Virus record (IMG/VR): IMGVR_UViG_3300044712_001937
Coordinates: 186,001 to 250,000 of that record
Reading direction: 5' to 3' (one strand)
DNA: 64,000 nt
Shown here: piece by piece, positions 3,383 through 48,043 of the stretch
Position numbering within the stretch: the stretch's first letter is position 1
Layout: each line of letters begins with the position of its first letter
Notes under the pieces: model-generated
Database searches by the model: none
The model's input: the letters and a program-made list of their open reading frames with translations, nothing else
What the model was told of the DNA's origin: nothing
Program-made: the position numbers and the translations under genes

Positions 3383-3592
3383 ATGAAAATTTTATTAGCG
3401 ATTACTTTTGTATTTGGAGTATTGCAATTTCTTTCAGTTTTAAAGGTATTTAATATATCACTTTCATTAATTACACGTGCAATAATACCTCATAATGAAA
3501 AAACTTTATTTGGTAAATTTATGGAAATATTGGGAGTTTGGTTTTTTTATTTCTCTCTATGTTTTCAGGCTTGGTATTGGTTGTTTAAATAA
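3383..3592 (+). CDS. Small membrane protein
   Basis: Hydrophobic ORF in run. Confidence 0.6.
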   Translation: MKILLAITFVFGVLQFLSVLKVFNISLSLITRAIIPHNEKTLFGKFMEILGVWFFYFSLCFQAWYWLFK

Positions 3593-3682: not shown

Positions 3683-4549
3683 TTAACTTTCGATAATATT
3701 TTTTATTATATCAACATCGAGTTTATATATTTTTGCAATAGTTTCGATATTAACATTTTTATCTGCAAATATTTTAATACTTTCTATAATATCTGGGTCA
3801 AGATAATTTTTAACCATGAGTTCAATTTGTTTATTTAATTCATTTGACTCAAATTGTTTCTCAATATTAATAATACAATTATTATCTACAGGTTTATTAT
3901 CAGCAGGTAAGTTATCTACAATATTTTTAAGTTTATTAATGACGTTAATTCTAATATTCATTGGTTGCTCTAACCAAAATTCATTCAGATTATTTAGTAA
4001 TCGTTCTTTATCATATTCTTCAAGTATAAGAAGAATGATTTTAACTAATTCATCTTTATTAAATTTTATAAATGAAGTATAGAATAAATCTAAAAACGTA
4101 ATATCAACATCAATAGGTTTTTTAACTTCCGGTTTAATATCCGTAATACTTATTGTTGTATTAGATACTGGCATATTAGATATTGGTATGGTTGGTATTG
4201 GAATAGTGGGAGTAATTGTTTTTTTCATATACTCCCATTTAATATTATCTATTCTTAAATCATCAGCATCGCCATTAATAAATTTAATGATTAATTTATT
4301 ATTTTTAACCAATTGATAATTCTCAGGTTTAGGAATGAAAGCATTAGCCATTAAGGAATGGATAGAAATTTTTTCTTTTTTCCCAAGATTATTATATAGA
4401 ACAGCATACCAATAATATTTATTTCTTTTAATATCCCAATATTGTTTAACTATATCAACTATTTCGGAGTTTATTATAGATTTAATGTTACCTTTGGAGC
4501 TAATAAAATATAGTTCTTCGTATCCAACAACAGGTTTCCATGTTTCCAT
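3683..4549 (-). CDS. NUMOD4 protein with degenerate HNH and C-terminal HTH
   Basis: ETWKPVVGYEELYFISSKGNIKS is NUMOD4; KFINGDADDLRIDNIKWE is HNH-like without His; terminal IETIAKIYKLDVDII is HTH-like. Confidence 0.7.
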   Translation of the reverse strand: METWKPVVGYEELYFISSKGNIKSIINSEIVDIVKQYWDIKRNKYYWYAVLYNNLGKKEKISIHSLMANAFIPKPENYQLVKNNKLIIKFINGDADDLRIDNIKWEYMKKTITPTIPIPTIPISNMPVSNTTISITDIKPEVKKPIDVDITFLDLFYTSFIKFNKDELVKIILLILEEYDKERLLNNLNEFWLEQPMNIRINVINKLKNIVDNLPADNKPVDNNCIINIEKQFESNELNKQIELMVKNYLDPDIIESIKIFADKNVNIETIAKIYKLDVDIIKNIIES

Positions 4550-5570: not shown

Positions 5571-5733
5571 CTTACATTAATTTAGTTTTAAATTGAAACA
5601 AATGTAAATTGAAATATTTTATTATCCAAATAAATTATTAAAATATTTTCATGAAAATTATAATATGATTAATATATGTTAGTAACATTAGATTATTAAT
5701 TTCGTATATAAAACAAACAAAATAATATCAACC

Positions 5734-6189
5734 ATGAAAGATTTAATTATCCAAGCTTTAGACTCAGCGTTTCTCAAACTTGAAAGTCAAGTTCCATTAA
5801 ATAAAAAGAAATTTAAGTCTCTTAGTATTATGGATGTTAAACCTACAGAATTAGCTTCATTTATGTTAGATAATAACATTCCTGATACTGCTTATTTTGA
5901 TGGCAATGATAATGGTAATGATGGTTGGGATGATATTCTATTAACATGGGAAATATATGTTCCTACAAATGAAGATGATAATTTAAAGTTTAAGAAAAAT
6001 AGGTTTACGGATATTGCTTGGAGATTTATATATAAATTATTAATAACAAGTGGTTATAAGAGGGTTGGTTATAATACTGGTTTATTAAAGGAATTTAATG
6101 ATACTACTGTATATGATATGTATATCAATAAAGATTTTGATAGGCTTGTTAGGTATTACTCGTTAGCATTTGTTAAAATAGGTAAATAA
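5734..6189 (+). CDS. Hypothetical protein
   Basis: Behind promoter motif at 5682. Confidence 0.75.
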   Translation: MKDLIIQALDSAFLKLESQVPLNKKKFKSLSIMDVKPTELASFMLDNNIPDTAYFDGNDNGNDGWDDILLTWEIYVPTNEDDNLKFKKNRFTDIAWRFIYKLLITSGYKRVGYNTGLLKEFNDTTVYDMYINKDFDRLVRYYSLAFVKIGK

Positions 6190-7414: not shown

Positions 7415-7810
7415 ATGAAAACCCAGAACAATTCTAAATTTAGAAATGTTAAAGAGTTTAAAACTCTTATTGAAAGATATGAGACTATAACACTTGAAGA
7501 AATTGAGGAAGTTTGGAGTAATAAAAAGGAAATAGAATCCTTGGATTTAGTTGGTGAATATTCCACTAAAGTTGCTTATAAGTTAACTGGTTTTGGTTGG
7601 AATTTTAGTTGTAGTTTATGTATTGCTTGTGATGAAATTTGTTCTGAATGTGTATATGAAATTAATTATGGATGTTTTAAATCTGAATTAAGAGAATCGT
7701 ATTATAATATTGTAAATTCAGAAACTGAATCTGAATTACTCAATGCTTTCCGTGAAAGAGCAAAAGTATTAAGATTATATGCAAAAGAGAATAATATAAA
7801 TATTGAATAA
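7415..7810 (+). CDS. Cys-rich hypothetical protein (tandem paralog 1)
   Basis: KEFKxLIERYE...LTGF...CxLC...CxxCVY. Confidence 0.8.
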   Translation: MKTQNNSKFRNVKEFKTLIERYETITLEEIEEVWSNKKEIESLDLVGEYSTKVAYKLTGFGWNFSCSLCIACDEICSECVYEINYGCFKSELRESYYNIVNSETESELLNAFRERAKVLRLYAKENNINIE

Positions 7811-9438: not shown

Positions 9439-9862
9439 TATGGAAAACATAAAAGAAGTCAATGCTAAATTTAAAGAATATGTTGAAGGTAATATAATTA
9501 TTGCAAAATTCATGGGTGCAAGAATAGAGCATGATTATTCTTTTATTGAAAATGTTCAAGATGGTTTAGGATATTATTTCTTAAAAGAAAATGCGCCTGA
9601 AAATGATTTAAGATATTCTACTTCTGGAATAAAATATCATACATCGTGGGATTGGTTAATGCCAGTTGTTGAAAAGATTGAGAATTTTGGAAATTGTGAC
9701 ATTCAAATCCATAGTCATATATTTTATATTAATTTTGAAAATGGAAATTATAAAAAAGATTTTCATAGATATGAAAACTTAACTAAATTAGAAATGGTTT
9801 GGCTTGCTGTAGTGGAGTTTATTAAATGGTATGATGAAACCAAGAACACCAATGTACAGTAA
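9428..9862 (+). CDS. Hypothetical phage protein, paralog of 22507
   Basis: NxxIAxFM...YHTxWDWLMPVVEKI. Confidence 0.75.
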   Translation: MYSNMENIKEVNAKFKEYVEGNIIIAKFMGARIEHDYSFIENVQDGLGYYFLKENAPENDLRYSTSGIKYHTSWDWLMPVVEKIENFGNCDIQIHSHIFYINFENGNYKKDFHRYENLTKLEMVWLAVVEFIKWYDETKNTNVQ

Positions 9863-31416: not shown

Positions 31417-32865
31417 ATGAGTGATATTATCTTAACAAGAAAAATAAAACTTGGTGTTTATGTTCCAGAAATTATTGTTGATGAAAAAGAACGTAAAACA
31501 TATAAAGATTTTGTTTGGAGTTTATTACGGAATATTAATCGACAGAATTTTGAATTTCATAATCTATTAGTAAAAAAACTAATTGAAATTGATGCTATAA
31601 TTTCCTCTCGATTAAGTGTAGATGATAAATTTATCAAATTAAAAAATAATTATTTTAAAGATAAAAAAGTATCAAAACCTTATTTTGATTATATCAAACA
31701 AACACAAAAAGAATATATTGAATCGTTAAGTTATAAAAATATTAATTCTTATATTTATAATTATTTAGTTCAATATATTAAATCATTATCTGATGAACAA
31801 CAATTAATTAATTCATATTCTTATTGCGCAATATCTAAAAATGTTTGTGATAAATATAATGATGATTTATTTGATGTAAATAGAGGTATAAAAAACGTTG
31901 CCTTTTATAAAAATACTCAACCAATTCCTATTAATATAAAAGCACCTTCATATATTGATGAAAAAGGAGTTAAATCAAAATCATTGGGAAAGTTTTGGTT
32001 TAATAAACATGAAGATAAATATGTCTTTAAATTTAAATCTTCAAAAAAACATGATATTGAATTATTACTTTTATTTGGTAAAGATAGAAGTAATAATAGA
32101 ATTATGATTGATAGAATCTATAATAATGATTCTAATTATAAAATTTGTGATTCTGATATTCAAATTATAGATAATGAAATATTTTTATTATTAACAATAA
32201 AACAATTTAATATTGAAAATAAAATTCTCGATAAAAATAAGGTATTAGGAGTTGATTTAGGTATTAAATGTGCTGCATATATTGCTACAAATAATTCATT
32301 AGAAAGACAACAAATAGGTTCTAAAGAATTTGTACTATTAAAAACTAAATTGCAAATTGAAAAAGATAAAAGATTACTTCAACGAAATTCAATATTTTCA
32401 AAATCAGGGCATGGAAGAACAAGAAAACTTCAAAAATTAAATGATTTTAAAGAATATGAAAAGAATTTTAGAAATACTTTTAACCATCAAATATCTTCTG
32501 AAATTATAAGTCATGCAATTAAATGGAATTGTGGTCAAATTAATGTAGAAGATTTATCAGCAATACCTTTAGAAGAAAAAAATAAAAGAATTCTTCGTAA
32601 TTGGGCATATTTTGATTTATTAAATAAAATTGAATATAAAGCTAAAAAAAATGGAATAAACTTTTTAAAAGTTAATCCAGCATATACATCCCAAATATGT
32701 AATGTTTGTGGGAAAAAAGGTGAACGAATAAAACAAGATACTTTTATTTGTATTAATCAGGATTGTAAATTTCACGATAAACCAATTAATGCAGATTATA
32801 ATGCAGCAATTAATATTGCAAAAAATATTAACATAAAAAAAGAAGAAATTGTATCAATATCCTAA
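31417..32865 (+). CDS. cas12f: Compact type V effector (Cas12f/TnpB family), 482 aa
   Basis: RuvC-I VLGVDLG; RuvC-II NVEDLS; Zn finger TSQICNVCG...CINQDC; RuvC-III NADYNAA; adjacent array and anti-repeat. Confidence 0.85.
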   Translation: MSDIILTRKIKLGVYVPEIIVDEKERKTYKDFVWSLLRNINRQNFEFHNLLVKKLIEIDAIISSRLSVDDKFIKLKNNYFKDKKVSKPYFDYIKQTQKEYIESLSYKNINSYIYNYLVQYIKSLSDEQQLINSYSYCAISKNVCDKYNDDLFDVNRGIKNVAFYKNTQPIPINIKAPSYIDEKGVKSKSLGKFWFNKHEDKYVFKFKSSKKHDIELLLLFGKDRSNNRIMIDRIYNNDSNYKICDSDIQIIDNEIFLLLTIKQFNIENKILDKNKVLGVDLGIKCAAYIATNNSLERQQIGSKEFVLLKTKLQIEKDKRLLQRNSIFSKSGHGRTRKLQKLNDFKEYEKNFRNTFNHQISSEIISHAIKWNCGQINVEDLSAIPLEEKNKRILRNWAYFDLLNKIEYKAKKNGINFLKVNPAYTSQICNVCGKKGERIKQDTFICINQDCKFHDKPINADYNAAINIAKNINIKKEEIVSIS

Positions 32866-32889
32866 AATTATATTATATTTGTATCATCA

Positions 32890-33070
32890 TTTTGAATTTA
32901 AGTTCTTTGATATAATTGATATTATTGTTTTTAGTTAAACAATAATTATGGCTGGTTGTACAGCCAAAAGTGAGGTCGAAACCTAAAAAATGAATAATTT
33001 TGAGCAAAGTTTCATAGAACACTCACTAAATATCTTTCATTATTTTTAAATAAAATATTAATTTACAACA
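32890..33070 (+). ncRNA. Putative tracrRNA
   Basis: TATATTTG at 32874-32881; hairpins GGCTG-GTTGTA-CAGCC and AGGT-CGAA-ACCT; anti-repeats TATCTTTCA (33031) and TTTACAAC (33062); 5' end approximate. Confidence 0.65.
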
Positions 33071-33086
33071 AATTACATAAAGGTAT

Positions 33087-33451
33087 GTTGTAAACAACCA
33101 CAAATTGAAAGGTACTTACAACTATTTGGACATAGAAGTACTGATTATATCAGTTGTAAACAACCACAAATTGAAAGGTACTTACAACTCATTACTTACC
33201 TGCCTTTCTTTTATCTAAGTTGTAAACAACCACAAATTGAAAGGTACTTACAACGTGCTGGTAGTCCTCAGATTCGTTTAATTGTTGTAAACAACCACAA
33301 ATTGAAAGGTACTTACAACTATTCAATATACAAGAAATGTATTAAAAGAGTTGTAAACAACCACAAATTGAAAGGTACTTACAACCTATGGTTAGGATAC
33401 TGTTATTTTTTTCATGTTGTAAACAACCACAAATTGAAAGGTACTTACAAC
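33087..33451 (+). CRISPR. CRISPR array: 6 identical 36-nt repeats, 5 spacers (30,30,29,30,30 nt)
   Basis: Repeat GTTGTAAACAACCACAAATTGAAAGGTACTTACAAC at 33087, 33153, 33219, 33284, 33350, 33416. Confidence 0.98.
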
Positions 33452-33487
33452 AGTAGGAGAAGTTCGGGTTCGATTCCCACTACTCTA
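33452..33487 (+). pseudogene. tRNA T-arm remnant
   Basis: GGG-TTCGATT-CCC directly after the last repeat. Confidence 0.4.
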
Positions 33488-33500
33488 TTAAAATTAATTT

Positions 33501-33596
33501 GGTGCTGTTTGTAATGTTGGCTATACATTTTGTCCATGAAGCGTAAAGTGAAGTATGGCAAGCTCAACGTAGGTTCAATTCCTACCAGCACCACCA
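33501..33596 (+). tRNA. 96-nt tRNA-like RNA with encoded CCA and non-canonical anticodon arm
   Basis: GGTGCTG/CAGCACC-A-CCA; D-stem TGTA/TACA; T-arm GTAGG-TTCAATT-CCTAC. Confidence 0.75.
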
Positions 33597-45764: not shown

Positions 45765-46247
45765 ATGTTAAACCAATGGAAGATTAATCATATGACTATT
45801 ACTTATCTTAAAGGTGATGTAACATATCCAATTGGTGATGGTAATAAAATAATACCGCACTGTTGTAATGATTCTTCAAAATGGGGGCGTGGTTTCGTCT
45901 TGGCTCTCAGCAAACGTTGGAGAGAACCCGAAGAAGTTTATCGTTCAGTAAAACTAGAAAATCTTATTCTTGGAAAAGTTCAATTCATTTGTGTTGAAAA
46001 TGATATTATTGTTGCAAACATGGTTGGTCAACATGATATTAAACCTAATGAATTAGGCGAACCTCCTGTTAGATATTGGGCAATAAGAAAATGTTTACAA
46101 CAAGTAAACCGCATGGCAAAATTATCTAATTCAACAATACATTGCCCTAAGTTCGGAAGTGGCTTAAGTGCTGGAAAATGGGAAGAGATTGAAAAAATTA
46201 TTATAGAAACTATTGAAGTGGATGTATTTGTTTATGATTTAATTTAA
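45765..46247 (+). CDS. Macro domain (ADP-ribose processing) protein (start probably 45792)
   Basis: YLKGDVT...HCCND...WGRGFV...IHCPKFGSGLSAGKWEEI. Confidence 0.85.
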   Translation: MLNQWKINHMTITYLKGDVTYPIGDGNKIIPHCCNDSSKWGRGFVLALSKRWREPEEVYRSVKLENLILGKVQFICVENDIIVANMVGQHDIKPNELGEPPVRYWAIRKCLQQVNRMAKLSNSTIHCPKFGSGLSAGKWEEIEKIIIETIEVDVFVYDLI

Positions 46248-46253
46248 AATAAT

Positions 46254-46622
46254 ATGGAAAACAAATCTATAAAAATTAATGTACCCGAAGGGTTTGAAAT
46301 TGATAAGGATAAATCAACGTTTGATGAAATTATTTTTAAGCCAAAACAGAGTTTTGAAAAAGATATGTCAGACTTTTTGTTTAATATTATCAATGGTTCA
46401 ACCATGATAATGACTGAAAAGGATGAAGTCACATATTATAAAGATAATGAATGGATTCTGCAACAGGATTTTAAAAAAGATAATTTATGGGTTAGATATT
46501 CATTAATTTGGGTAATTTTTGAGAAAAAATATAGTCTTAACAACCAACAAATCAGTGATTTTATTAAGGGTTGGGTAGAAACCAACCTAAATTGGAAGGG
46601 ATTAACACCAGGTTGCTGGTGA
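46254..46622 (+). CDS. Hypothetical protein whose C-terminus is encoded by a CRISPR-like repeat (copy A)
   Basis: Ends WVETNLNWKGLTP-GCW*, with the stop inside the spacer. Confidence 0.85.
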   Translation: MENKSIKINVPEGFEIDKDKSTFDEIIFKPKQSFEKDMSDFLFNIINGSTMIMTEKDEVTYYKDNEWILQQDFKKDNLWVRYSLIWVIFEKKYSLNNQQISDFIKGWVETNLNWKGLTPGCW

Positions 46623-46675
46623 AGAAACGATTGAAAACAGGTAGAAACCAACCTAAATTGGAAGGGATTAACACC
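46574..46675 (+). CRISPR. In-gene mini-array A (repeat, 30-nt spacer, repeat)
   Basis: GGTAGAAACCAACCTAAATTGGAAGGGATTAACACC at 46574 and 46640 (identical); spacer AGGTTGCTGGTGAAGAAACGATTGAAAACA. Confidence 0.75.
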
Positions 46676-46700
46676 AGATAATATAAAATTTATATAATTT

Positions 46701-47054
46701 ATGTATAATAAACCATTAGTAGTATTAGCAAAGAAATTAGGATTTGAAAGTAAATTTTTTTCAGACCAACCTTGGAAGTTCTCAGAACGTGAACCGATGA
46801 GATATCAATTATGGCTGGAGGAATTAAAACAATGGTTAATCAATAATTATGATTTATATGTTGAAGTTCCAAAAACGATGAGCACTTTTATTAATAATGA
46901 ATCATACAAAAAAACTTATAAATTTACATTTAATATAAAAGATATTACTGATGAGCATTTTAAAACAACTTCTTTAAATGGATTCGATTCATATTTAAAA
47001 GCATTAGAAGTTGGCGTTCATAGAACATTAATTTATATAGATGAAATAAAATAA
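46701..47054 (+). CDS. Hypothetical protein, paralog of 50846
   Basis: LKQWL...YV...F/YxxYxxALExG. Confidence 0.7.
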   Translation: MYNKPLVVLAKKLGFESKFFSDQPWKFSEREPMRYQLWLEELKQWLINNYDLYVEVPKTMSTFINNESYKKTYKFTFNIKDITDEHFKTTSLNGFDSYLKALEVGVHRTLIYIDEIK

Positions 47055-47120
47055 TTATTAAAATATTTTGTATCTTTATGCGATATATTATAAAATAACC
47101 TTATTTAATCCTGAAATTAT

Positions 47121-47531
47121 ATGGACGTAGCTTTTCTAACTACCGATTTTAAACTACCAGATTATTCAAATGAATTATTAACCGCAGCACAAGCAATTGA
47201 AAAACTTAAGGATGAAATTGAAACTATAAATCTAAATAAAACAATTACTGATAAATCTCATGAAATAATATTTGAGCGTATCATTAAAGTTTTAGATTAT
47301 GTTGGAAAATTATCACAACCTTCATTTGAAATTGAGTATAAATTGGAAGAATTGTATATAATAAACTATCCACATTCTCCAGAGCTTGCAAAAAAATTAT
47401 GGCAAGACCACTATGAAAATATTCATCATCCATTCGATTTATTAAAAAACAGATGTTTTAGATTAATTGAAGAATTGGATGCAATATTTCATATAATTCA
47501 CAAAAGGCATCCAAGAAACTGGAAACCATAA
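47121..47531 (+). CDS. Hypothetical protein
   Basis: ORF in run. Confidence 0.75.
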   Translation: MDVAFLTTDFKLPDYSNELLTAAQAIEKLKDEIETINLNKTITDKSHEIIFERIIKVLDYVGKLSQPSFEIEYKLEELYIINYPHSPELAKKLWQDHYENIHHPFDLLKNRCFRLIEELDAIFHIIHKRHPRNWKP

Positions 47532-47559
47532 ACTATTAATATACCTTAAATTTAATAAC

Positions 47560-47967
47560 ATGGAAAACAAATCTATAAAAATTAACGTACCCGAAGGGTT
47601 TGAAATTGATAAAGATAAATCAAGTTTCGAAGAAATCGTTTTTAAAATAAAACAAGATATAAATAAAGAAATGTCAGATTTCTTATTTAAAATCGTCAAT
47701 GGTTGTATGATGAAAATGACTGATGAAAATAAAATCACTTATTATAAGGATGATGAGTGGATTTTACAACAGGATTTTAAAAAGAGTTATTTATGGATTA
47801 GATATTCATTAATTTGGGAAATTTTCGAGAAAAAATATGCTCTTAACTATCAACAAATCAAGAATTTTATAGTGGGTTGGGTAGAAACAAACCTAAATTG
47901 GAAGGGATTAACACCGCGACCTAAATGGAGTAATGTTCCTCATGAGGTAGAAACAAACCTAAATTAG
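47560..47967 (+). CDS. Hypothetical protein whose C-terminus runs through repeat-spacer-repeat (copy B)
   Basis: Ends WVETNLNWKGLTP-RPKWSNVPHE-VETNLN*. Confidence 0.85.
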   Translation: MENKSIKINVPEGFEIDKDKSSFEEIVFKIKQDINKEMSDFLFKIVNGCMMKMTDENKITYYKDDEWILQQDFKKSYLWIRYSLIWEIFEKKYALNYQQIKNFIVGWVETNLNWKGLTPRPKWSNVPHEVETNLN

Positions 47968-47981
47968 AAGGAATTAATACC
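47880..47981 (+). CRISPR. In-gene mini-array B (repeat, 30-nt spacer, degenerate repeat)
   Basis: GGTAGAAACAAACCTAAATTGGAAGGGATTAACACC at 47880; spacer GCGACCTAAATGGAGTAATGTTCCTCATGA; trailer GGTAGAAACAAACCTAAATTAGAAGGAATTAATACC at 47946. Confidence 0.75.
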
Positions 47982-48014: not shown

Positions 48015-48043
48015 AAAAAACCTGTATATTCTACAGGTTTTTT
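48015..48043. terminator. Bidirectional terminator at the strand switch
   Basis: AAAAAACCTGTA...TACAGGTTTTTT. Confidence 0.85.

Follow-up and report, generated by a model that had tools for sequence, protein, structure and literature searches.

How can the end of a protein-coding gene double as the opening repeat in a CRISPR array, and which integrase and effector would such an array serve? This question is raised by two paralogous genes in a 64-kilobase (kb) stretch of viral DNA, hereafter the window, that corresponds to positions 186001-250000 of the 364.7-kb IMG/VR contig IMGVR_UViG_3300044712_001937. The carrier is an AT-rich jumbo phage with rIIA/rIIB-like, endonuclease VII, homing endonuclease and RNA ligase genes, and the window has a guanine-plus-cytosine (GC) content of ~0.26 and holds 103 open reading frames (ORFs). 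A preliminary description of the window had proposed that both paralogues, here called family genes A and B, end in a 36-nucleotide (nt) unit that recurs after exactly 30 nt, and that these repeat-spacer-repeat units are of CRISPR type and start within the coding 3' ends. All four copies were located, as follows:

46254-46622, plus strand: family gene A, 122 residues; the last 12 conserved codons (VETNLNWKGLTP) make up repeat A1, with the stop codon inside spacer A
46574-46609, plus strand: repeat A1, 36 nt, within the coding sequence
46610-46639, plus strand: spacer A, 30 nt, GC 0.40, no match elsewhere
46640-46675, plus strand: repeat A2, same sequence as A1
47560-47967, plus strand: family gene B, 135 residues, paralogue of A; reads through spacer B and stops in the degenerate repeat B2
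47880-47915, plus strand: repeat B1, 36 nt, A at position 10
47916-47945, plus strand: spacer B, 30 nt, GC 0.43, no match elsewhere
47946-47981, plus strand: repeat B2, distal and degenerate, differing from B1 at 3 positions
48015-48043, plus strand: intrinsic-terminator-like hairpin, 34 nt 3' of array B, called by a consensus scan only

The finer claims of the preliminary description held as well. The two inserts are unrelated to each other and richer in GC (0.40 and 0.43) than the window. Position 10 of the repeat is C in A1 and A2 and A in B1 and B2, the diagnostic base from which independent duplications in the two paralogues (82% identical across their first 300 nt) had been deduced. A1, A2 and B1 fit the repeat pattern (C or A at position 10) with 0 mismatches and B2 with 3 mismatches, such that the distal repeat of copy B is indeed the degenerate one; no further copy at 3 or fewer mismatches is present in the window, and shuffled windows gave zero matches. 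The ORF translations likewise end as described, with A terminating in GLTPGCW at a stop three codons into spacer A and B acquiring RPKWSNVPHE from spacer B, followed by VETNLN and a stop in B2. CRISPR arrays are recognized by at least two direct repeats of 23-55 nt around unique spacers of similar length, and here the repeats measure 36 nt and the spacers 30 nt. What sets these loci apart is the leader, usually non-coding and AT-rich: the first repeat and the sequence upstream of it are coding. We conclude that a genuine CRISPR mini-array is present at both loci, and that a coding gene supplies its leader and first repeat. The position of the predicted hairpin suggests that the transcript of gene B carries array B as its 3' tail.

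If the ORF acts as the leader, as the preliminary description had put it, then homologues should carry different numbers of 36 + 30 nt units on their 3' ends. Our first search returned ten homologues, 39-76% identical overall, in which TNLNWKGLTP is invariant (10/10) and the Val and Glu that precede it are conserved in nine. Repeat numbers on the gene ends of the window genes and their relatives (L numbers) range from one to six:

One repeat: L003 (both paralogues), L049, L051 and L052
Two repeats: window genes A and B
Three repeats: L006, L010, L044, L046, L050 and L138
Four repeats: L002 and the second array of a 218-kb phage (L013/L146)
Six repeats: two arrays of the 218-kb phage, namely the first array of L013 and that of L009/L047

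Both the number of units and the spacer content therefore vary among relatives, which is characteristic of CRISPR arrays, as is the decay of terminal repeats, seen in six of them (array B of the window, array 1 of L013, L044, L050, L010 and L138). The relatives hold 31 unique spacers, of which 26 are 30 nt, three 29 nt and two 31 nt long, and none is common to two lineages. In every lineage the downstream repeats are copies of the last 36 nt of the lineage's own gene, even where the peptide has diverged. Since it is the farthest repeats that degenerate and genes carry one to six units, new spacers enter at the gene side, with the gene end serving as leader plus first repeat, just as the preliminary description had envisaged. 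A first repeat that is divergent occurs in L006 only. In L009/L047, the fifth of the six repeats is the variant typical of other arrays in the same 218-kb genome, which suggests, from the repeat variants themselves, that repeat-spacer units may be exchanged between arrays. We also observed that L008, one of three otherwise collinear contigs with the same embedded array, carries an IS607-like insertion (positions 1-1299, a serine recombinase and a TnpB fragment).

The arrangement extends well beyond close relatives. A profile search of 1.84 billion representatives placed 733 clusters in the family, and a 12-residue unit with an in-frame period of 22 residues (12 + 10) was present in 28 of the 150 best representatives, each with a peptide of its own, a count that misses arrays with a stop codon in the first spacer. 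Distant lineages, whose array-bearing members lie on contigs of 1-2 kb, have both a different repeat and a different peptide (VEVNTEWRGLAP, VETNTEWKGLTP, VEKNTKWSGITP, VATALNCKDFTP and VEEHFKLMLLTP). Two array-bearing family genes (L146, 6186-6999 and 7598-8255) were left uncalled by the gene caller of the Joint Genome Institute (JGI). This may be due to CRISPR masking by the pipeline; if so, the omission would explain how the overlap of gene and array went unnoticed.

Codon comparisons indicate that the repeat is constrained at the level of the peptide as well as that of the nucleotides. In the 11 genes of the closest clade the peptide is kept, except for two substitutions in L006 and one, Lys to Arg, in L010, and the repeats vary at six positions with differences that, these substitutions aside, are synonymous. 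As the variation in this clade is nearly all synonymous, selection must act on the protein. Yet the choice of codon is not free either: the third base of the Thr codon is A at repeat position 34 in 19 of 19 genes, whereas at position 10 all four bases occur in the same genes; the Val codon is always GTA or GTG, while GTT accounts for 59% of the Val codons in the phage; the closest clade invariably uses the rare codons AAG (17% usage), CTA (5%) and AAC (19%); and GGTAG, TTG and ACACC are retained as blocks where the residues are not the same. Overall synonymous-codon identity is no higher in the repeat than in the rest of the gene (0.644 vs 0.646), and the constraint on the nucleic acid is therefore position-specific. 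Across lineages, the repeat and the C-terminus of the protein diverge jointly. No base pairs are predicted in a consensus fold calculated from 13 variants of the repeat, and single folds are no better than those of shuffles, and the embedded repeat is thus without a conserved hairpin; an Rfam scan of the locus found no CRISPR-DR and no other credible family.

Which machinery could use these arrays? A relaxed search of the window for the embedded repeat uncovered a canonical CRISPR array beside a gene for a Cas12f-family effector, at a locus (31417-33451) on which the preliminary description was silent:

31417-32865, plus strand: Cas12f-family (type V-F / V-U3-like) effector, 482 residues
32866-33086, plus strand: candidate trans-activating CRISPR RNA (tracrRNA), a non-coding stretch of ~220 nt with conserved blocks, between cas12f and the array
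33087-33451, plus strand: canonical CRISPR array, in which 6 repeats (36 nt, GTTG...ACAAC type) enclose 5 spacers (29-30 nt)

The effector matches Cas12f1-like_TNB in Pfam (5.9e-18), guided_TnpB in NCBIfam (2.7e-43), PDB entry 9nzr, 'Cas12f Nuclease' (6e-48), and Cas12u3 (3e-82) and Cas12f (1e-78) in PADLOC, and D280, E378 and D460 form a candidate RuvC Asp-Glu-Asp triad in columns that are conserved among its relatives. A miniature effector with RuvC and zinc-ribbon motifs beside an array, the hallmark of type V-F, is thus found at the canonical locus and not at the embedded arrays. The non-coding block is a candidate tracrRNA because it is shared, in alignment, with three other phage Cas12f loci; an anti-repeat search gave tracrRNA-repeat duplex energies no better than with shuffled repeats. 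A reading of the repeat as Cas13b-like (GTTG...CAAC) was dropped once the Cas12f locus with that repeat type was found. The canonical array borders a tRNA-like sequence (33452-33596), in which ARAGORN predicts a tRNA-His of 96 nt (anticodon ATG; 33501-33596), and the bases right after the last repeat look like the end of a tRNA T-arm.

Compared in register, with both on one strand, embedded and canonical repeats agree at 24 of 36 positions, against a maximum of 21 in 20,000 shuffles. Among 27 distinct arrays associated with phage Cas12f or TnpB, the one closest to the embedded repeat is that of the phage's own Cas12f, and the conserved cores of the embedded repeats and the Cas12f arrays (tTG.A.GG and ACA.C) coincide. 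Acquisition next to such an effector can be followed in a sister Cas12f clade of near-identical phages, in which four contigs (L054-L057, ~7659-7760) have one and the same Cas12f protein and do not differ in the 40 nt upstream of the repeat. What follows the candidate tracrRNA is a solitary repeat in L054 and L056 and a repeat-spacer-repeat unit, with different spacers, in L055 and L057; the downstream flank of L055 is the same as in L054, that of L057 differs. The gain is a clean insertion of one repeat and one 29-30-nt spacer, and acquisition therefore does occur on such phage genomes.

We then asked what the embedded spacers match. The preliminary description had recommended a search of phage DNA with the two window spacers; across cultured phages, IMG/VR and 1 Mb of retrieved loci, the sole matches obtained were self matches of a relative. 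In L143, a 13-kb contig, both spacers of the embedded array match the contig itself (positions involved: 4256-4423, 3529-3558 and 9517-9546), the gene-proximal one at 30/30 positions and the distal one at 27/30, where the chance expectation of a 27/30 match in all DNA searched is ~1e-4. The perfect proximal and the imperfect distal match fit a polarity in which the newest spacer lies at the gene. The two protospacers share an AAAT flank and are both on the strand opposite to the genes, which are on the plus strand, and array-sense RNA would consequently be antisense to both messenger RNAs (mRNAs). The L143 spacers may be self-sampled by-products, products of an integrase trap, regulators, or weapons against near-identical rivals. 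In the AT-rich jumbo relatives, the mean GC content of the spacers (0.35) exceeds that of the genomes (0.26), and not all spacers can therefore be samples of the carrier's own DNA. For the 218-kb phage, none of the 13 spacers has a self match in the 29.7 kb (14% of the genome) that were covered, an outcome with an estimated probability of ~15% even if all of them were self-derived.

On balance, we think it probable, with reservations, that the embedded loci belong to the class of 36-nt repeats and 30-nt spacers used by phage Cas12f (type V-F), with a gene end as leader, and that they provide guides for the phage's own Cas12f. In this scheme, a Cas1-Cas2-type integrase, borne by the host or encoded in the remaining 300 kb of the phage, would recognize the gene end as a leader-repeat junction and insert ~30 nt beside the gene, thereby duplicating the embedded repeat. 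The mRNA of the family gene, with the array as its 3' tail, would be the precursor CRISPR RNA, and the guides would be loaded into the Cas12f of the phage and used against competing phages or other targets. Several observations weigh against this scheme. Embedded and canonical repeats differ at 12 of 36 positions, any compatibility with the tracrRNA being putative, and the embedded arrays lie 13 kb from cas12f rather than adjoining it. No Cas1, Cas2 or Cas4 is encoded among the 103 ORFs of the 64-kb window (out of 364.7 kb), and searches of the window itself, 1 Mb of retrieved phage DNA, 50,697 phage records and IMG/VR gave no protospacer for the window spacers. The self-matching spacers of L143 are awkward for an effector that cuts DNA. 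Moreover, the 218-kb relative, with its three embedded arrays, is absent from the best 80 Cas12f loci and lacks the tracrRNA motif, and at none of 80 phage Cas12f/TnpB loci is a family gene present within 3 kb. With no sign of this Cas12f clade in the 218-kb relative and no family gene near the 80 loci, phage Cas12f cannot be the general partner of the embedded arrays.

Could the partner be a host system instead? The embedded repeat might mimic the class 2 repeat of a host, probably one of the Bacteroidota, whose Cas1-Cas2 and effector would then act against rival phages. Such dependence on the host would account for relatives that have up to 6 repeats and no detectable phage Cas12f and for a window without adaptation genes; viral mini-arrays that use host Cas proteins and target related viruses provide a precedent (PMC11656645, PMC7162821), host adaptation modules of Flavobacterium act in trans on foreign arrays with 36-bp repeats (PMC8092290), and one spacer matches, at 27/30, a gene of its own phage type. 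However, the 25-nt core of the repeat has no cellular match among one genome each of 185,579 species (the phage's host is not identified), and an 11-nt core at array spacing occurs at 29 loci in these genomes, none of which contains a stretch that resembles the repeat to within 12 mismatches. The type II-C or VI-B host partner of the preliminary description is thus not borne out. The closest repeat found is the phage's own, and the embedded repeat varies widely from one phage lineage to another, in step with the phage gene and not with any known host repeat. We therefore regard a host-dependent array as unlikely. That no host repeat to mimic was found also counts against the idea that the embedded repeat is an RNA or DNA decoy, which would soak up a Cas effector in the manner of RNA anti-CRISPRs (Racrs) or divert the adaptation integrase, such that spacers taken from the phage end up in phage DNA and not in the host array, and leave the arrays behind as scars. 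Many family members do have a solitary repeat, solitary-repeat RNA anti-CRISPRs are established (PMC10651486), and the origin of both L143 spacers in the carrier's own genome (30/30 gene-proximal, 27/30 distal) is what a trap would produce. On the other hand, the GC content of spacers in the jumbo relatives is not that of random self samples and, as a weak point given the estimate above, the 13 spacers of the 218-kb phage lack self matches; a decoy or trap appears distinctly improbable to us.

Two further explanations were considered. The preliminary description had raised in-frame diversification of the protein as a possibility; in this reading, spacer insertion would be selected because it adds variable 10-residue cassettes and copies of the 12-residue motif to the C-terminus. 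The 66-nt period does preserve the frame, and some genes read through one to three units. Yet spacers are not preferentially free of stops in the frame of the gene (22 of 31, compared to 21 and 16 of 31 in the other two), five of the 31 (29 or 31 nt) break the frame, and most tails end within 2-10 codons while distal repeats decay. The C-terminal extensions are thus a by-product of the array layout and not a selected function, and we consider selection for protein variation very unlikely. Ordinary tandem duplication or a chance repeat, without any CRISPR machinery, would account for the presence of direct repeats and nothing further, and has next to no probability: the inserts resemble neither one another nor their flanks, the 36 + 30 geometry is constant across lineages whose repeats differ, and shuffles yield no match. 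Guides for the phage's own Cas12f thus remain our preferred explanation. A wider idea, which we entertain tentatively and do not expect to hold in full, is that the 3' end of the family gene is a dedicated protein-coding 'array seed', in which leader and repeat form a portable module that brings a Cas1-Cas2 integrase to the phage DNA, such that arrays are repeatedly born from coding sequence. The canonical Cas12f repeat would then have the same origin and the protein would be a new CRISPR-associated factor, and the module would, depending on the lineage, arm a phage effector, silence the phage's own genes or divert host adaptation. Output of the protein would be coupled to that of guides because cleavage within the first repeat removes the stop codon.

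The family protein itself has few recognizable relations. AlphaFold models it with confidence as a small alpha/beta domain (predicted local distance difference test score of 80); searches with it returned no PDB fold match, only uncharacterised phage proteins in BFVD, and no match in Pfam, PHROGs or PADLOC. In L054-L057, a 52-residue ORF (5692-5850) just 5' of cas12f resembles the family in the N-terminal motif (INVPDGYEIDKEKSTFE) alone, and the stretch encoding this motif in a family gene of the 218-kb relative has a DNA-level match to the crAss-like phage cr116_1. Both matches hint at what may be a mobile N-terminal module and at a putative host among the Bacteroidota. Close to the arrays, the gene directly 5' of family gene A (45765-46247) matches PHROG 335 'phosphatase' (1e-25) and, weakly, DarG in PADLOC (0.0047); it is possibly macrodomain-like and a candidate counter-defence gene. 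On the minus strand, antisense to the start of gene B, 47496-47570 has a sub-threshold match (28.5 bits, E 0.11) to the Bacteroidetes FopS small RNA family.

CRISPR leaders and repeats are taken as non-coding, and array finders usually discard repeats inside ORFs. The nearest analogy to a guide RNA scaffold within the 3' end of a protein-coding gene is the omega-RNA of TnpB, which overlaps the 3' end of its own gene and has its guide just downstream; here, by contrast, the overlapped gene encodes an unrelated 120-residue protein instead of the nuclease, and the guides form an expandable array. Nivala and colleagues reportedly described, in 2018, off-target 'neo-CRISPR' integration by Cas1-Cas2 at sites that resemble a leader-repeat junction. 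As in our arrays, the inserted spacer comes to lie between two copies of a repeat-length native sequence and ordinary DNA becomes a repeat, but those are said to be rare laboratory events at arbitrary sites, whereas the site here is conserved, recurs in hundreds of lineages and has a repeat under nucleotide constraint. Arrays and miniature type V effectors are known from huge phages (Al-Shayeb et al. 2020, PMC7162821), and the 365-kb phage with its miniature Cas12f/Cas14-type (type V-F, V-U) effector, its short 36-nt/~30-nt arrays and no nearby adaptation genes resembles them. It differs in its extra arrays, which lie at a distance from the effector and begin inside the coding 3' ends of genes from a conserved family, and in an embedded repeat that is 24/36 identical to the canonical one. 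Virus-borne mini-arrays in interviral conflict, reviewed in PMC11656645 and modelled in PMC7099407, similarly have one to few spacers, a viral carrier and no adjacent cas genes, and a spacer of one of our relatives matches a gene of its own phage type; their repeats, however, are identical to those of the host and lie in non-coding DNA, unlike the present ones, which have no host match and of which the first is translated and co-evolves with the protein. Racrs are small non-coding RNAs that mimic the host repeat (PMC10651486). Family members with a single repeat resemble such solitary repeat units in phage genomes, except that the unit here is part of a coding sequence, lacks a known host counterpart and is often accompanied by spacers. 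The literature searched contained no CRISPR array that takes its leader and first repeat from the translated end of a conserved gene, with a repeat that co-evolves with the protein in hundreds of lineages.

Taken at face value, one repeat is read twice in this family, as a signal in RNA or DNA and as protein, across at least 733 protein clusters and in co-evolution with its codons. The lineages thereby provide a natural series for the repeat positions that are truly needed by integrase and effector. That the family gene goes uncalled by the JGI gene caller where arrays are present exposes a blind spot of annotation. For phage biology, the family shows a route by which arrays arise from ordinary sequence, and it bears on how phages without adaptation genes gain spacers.

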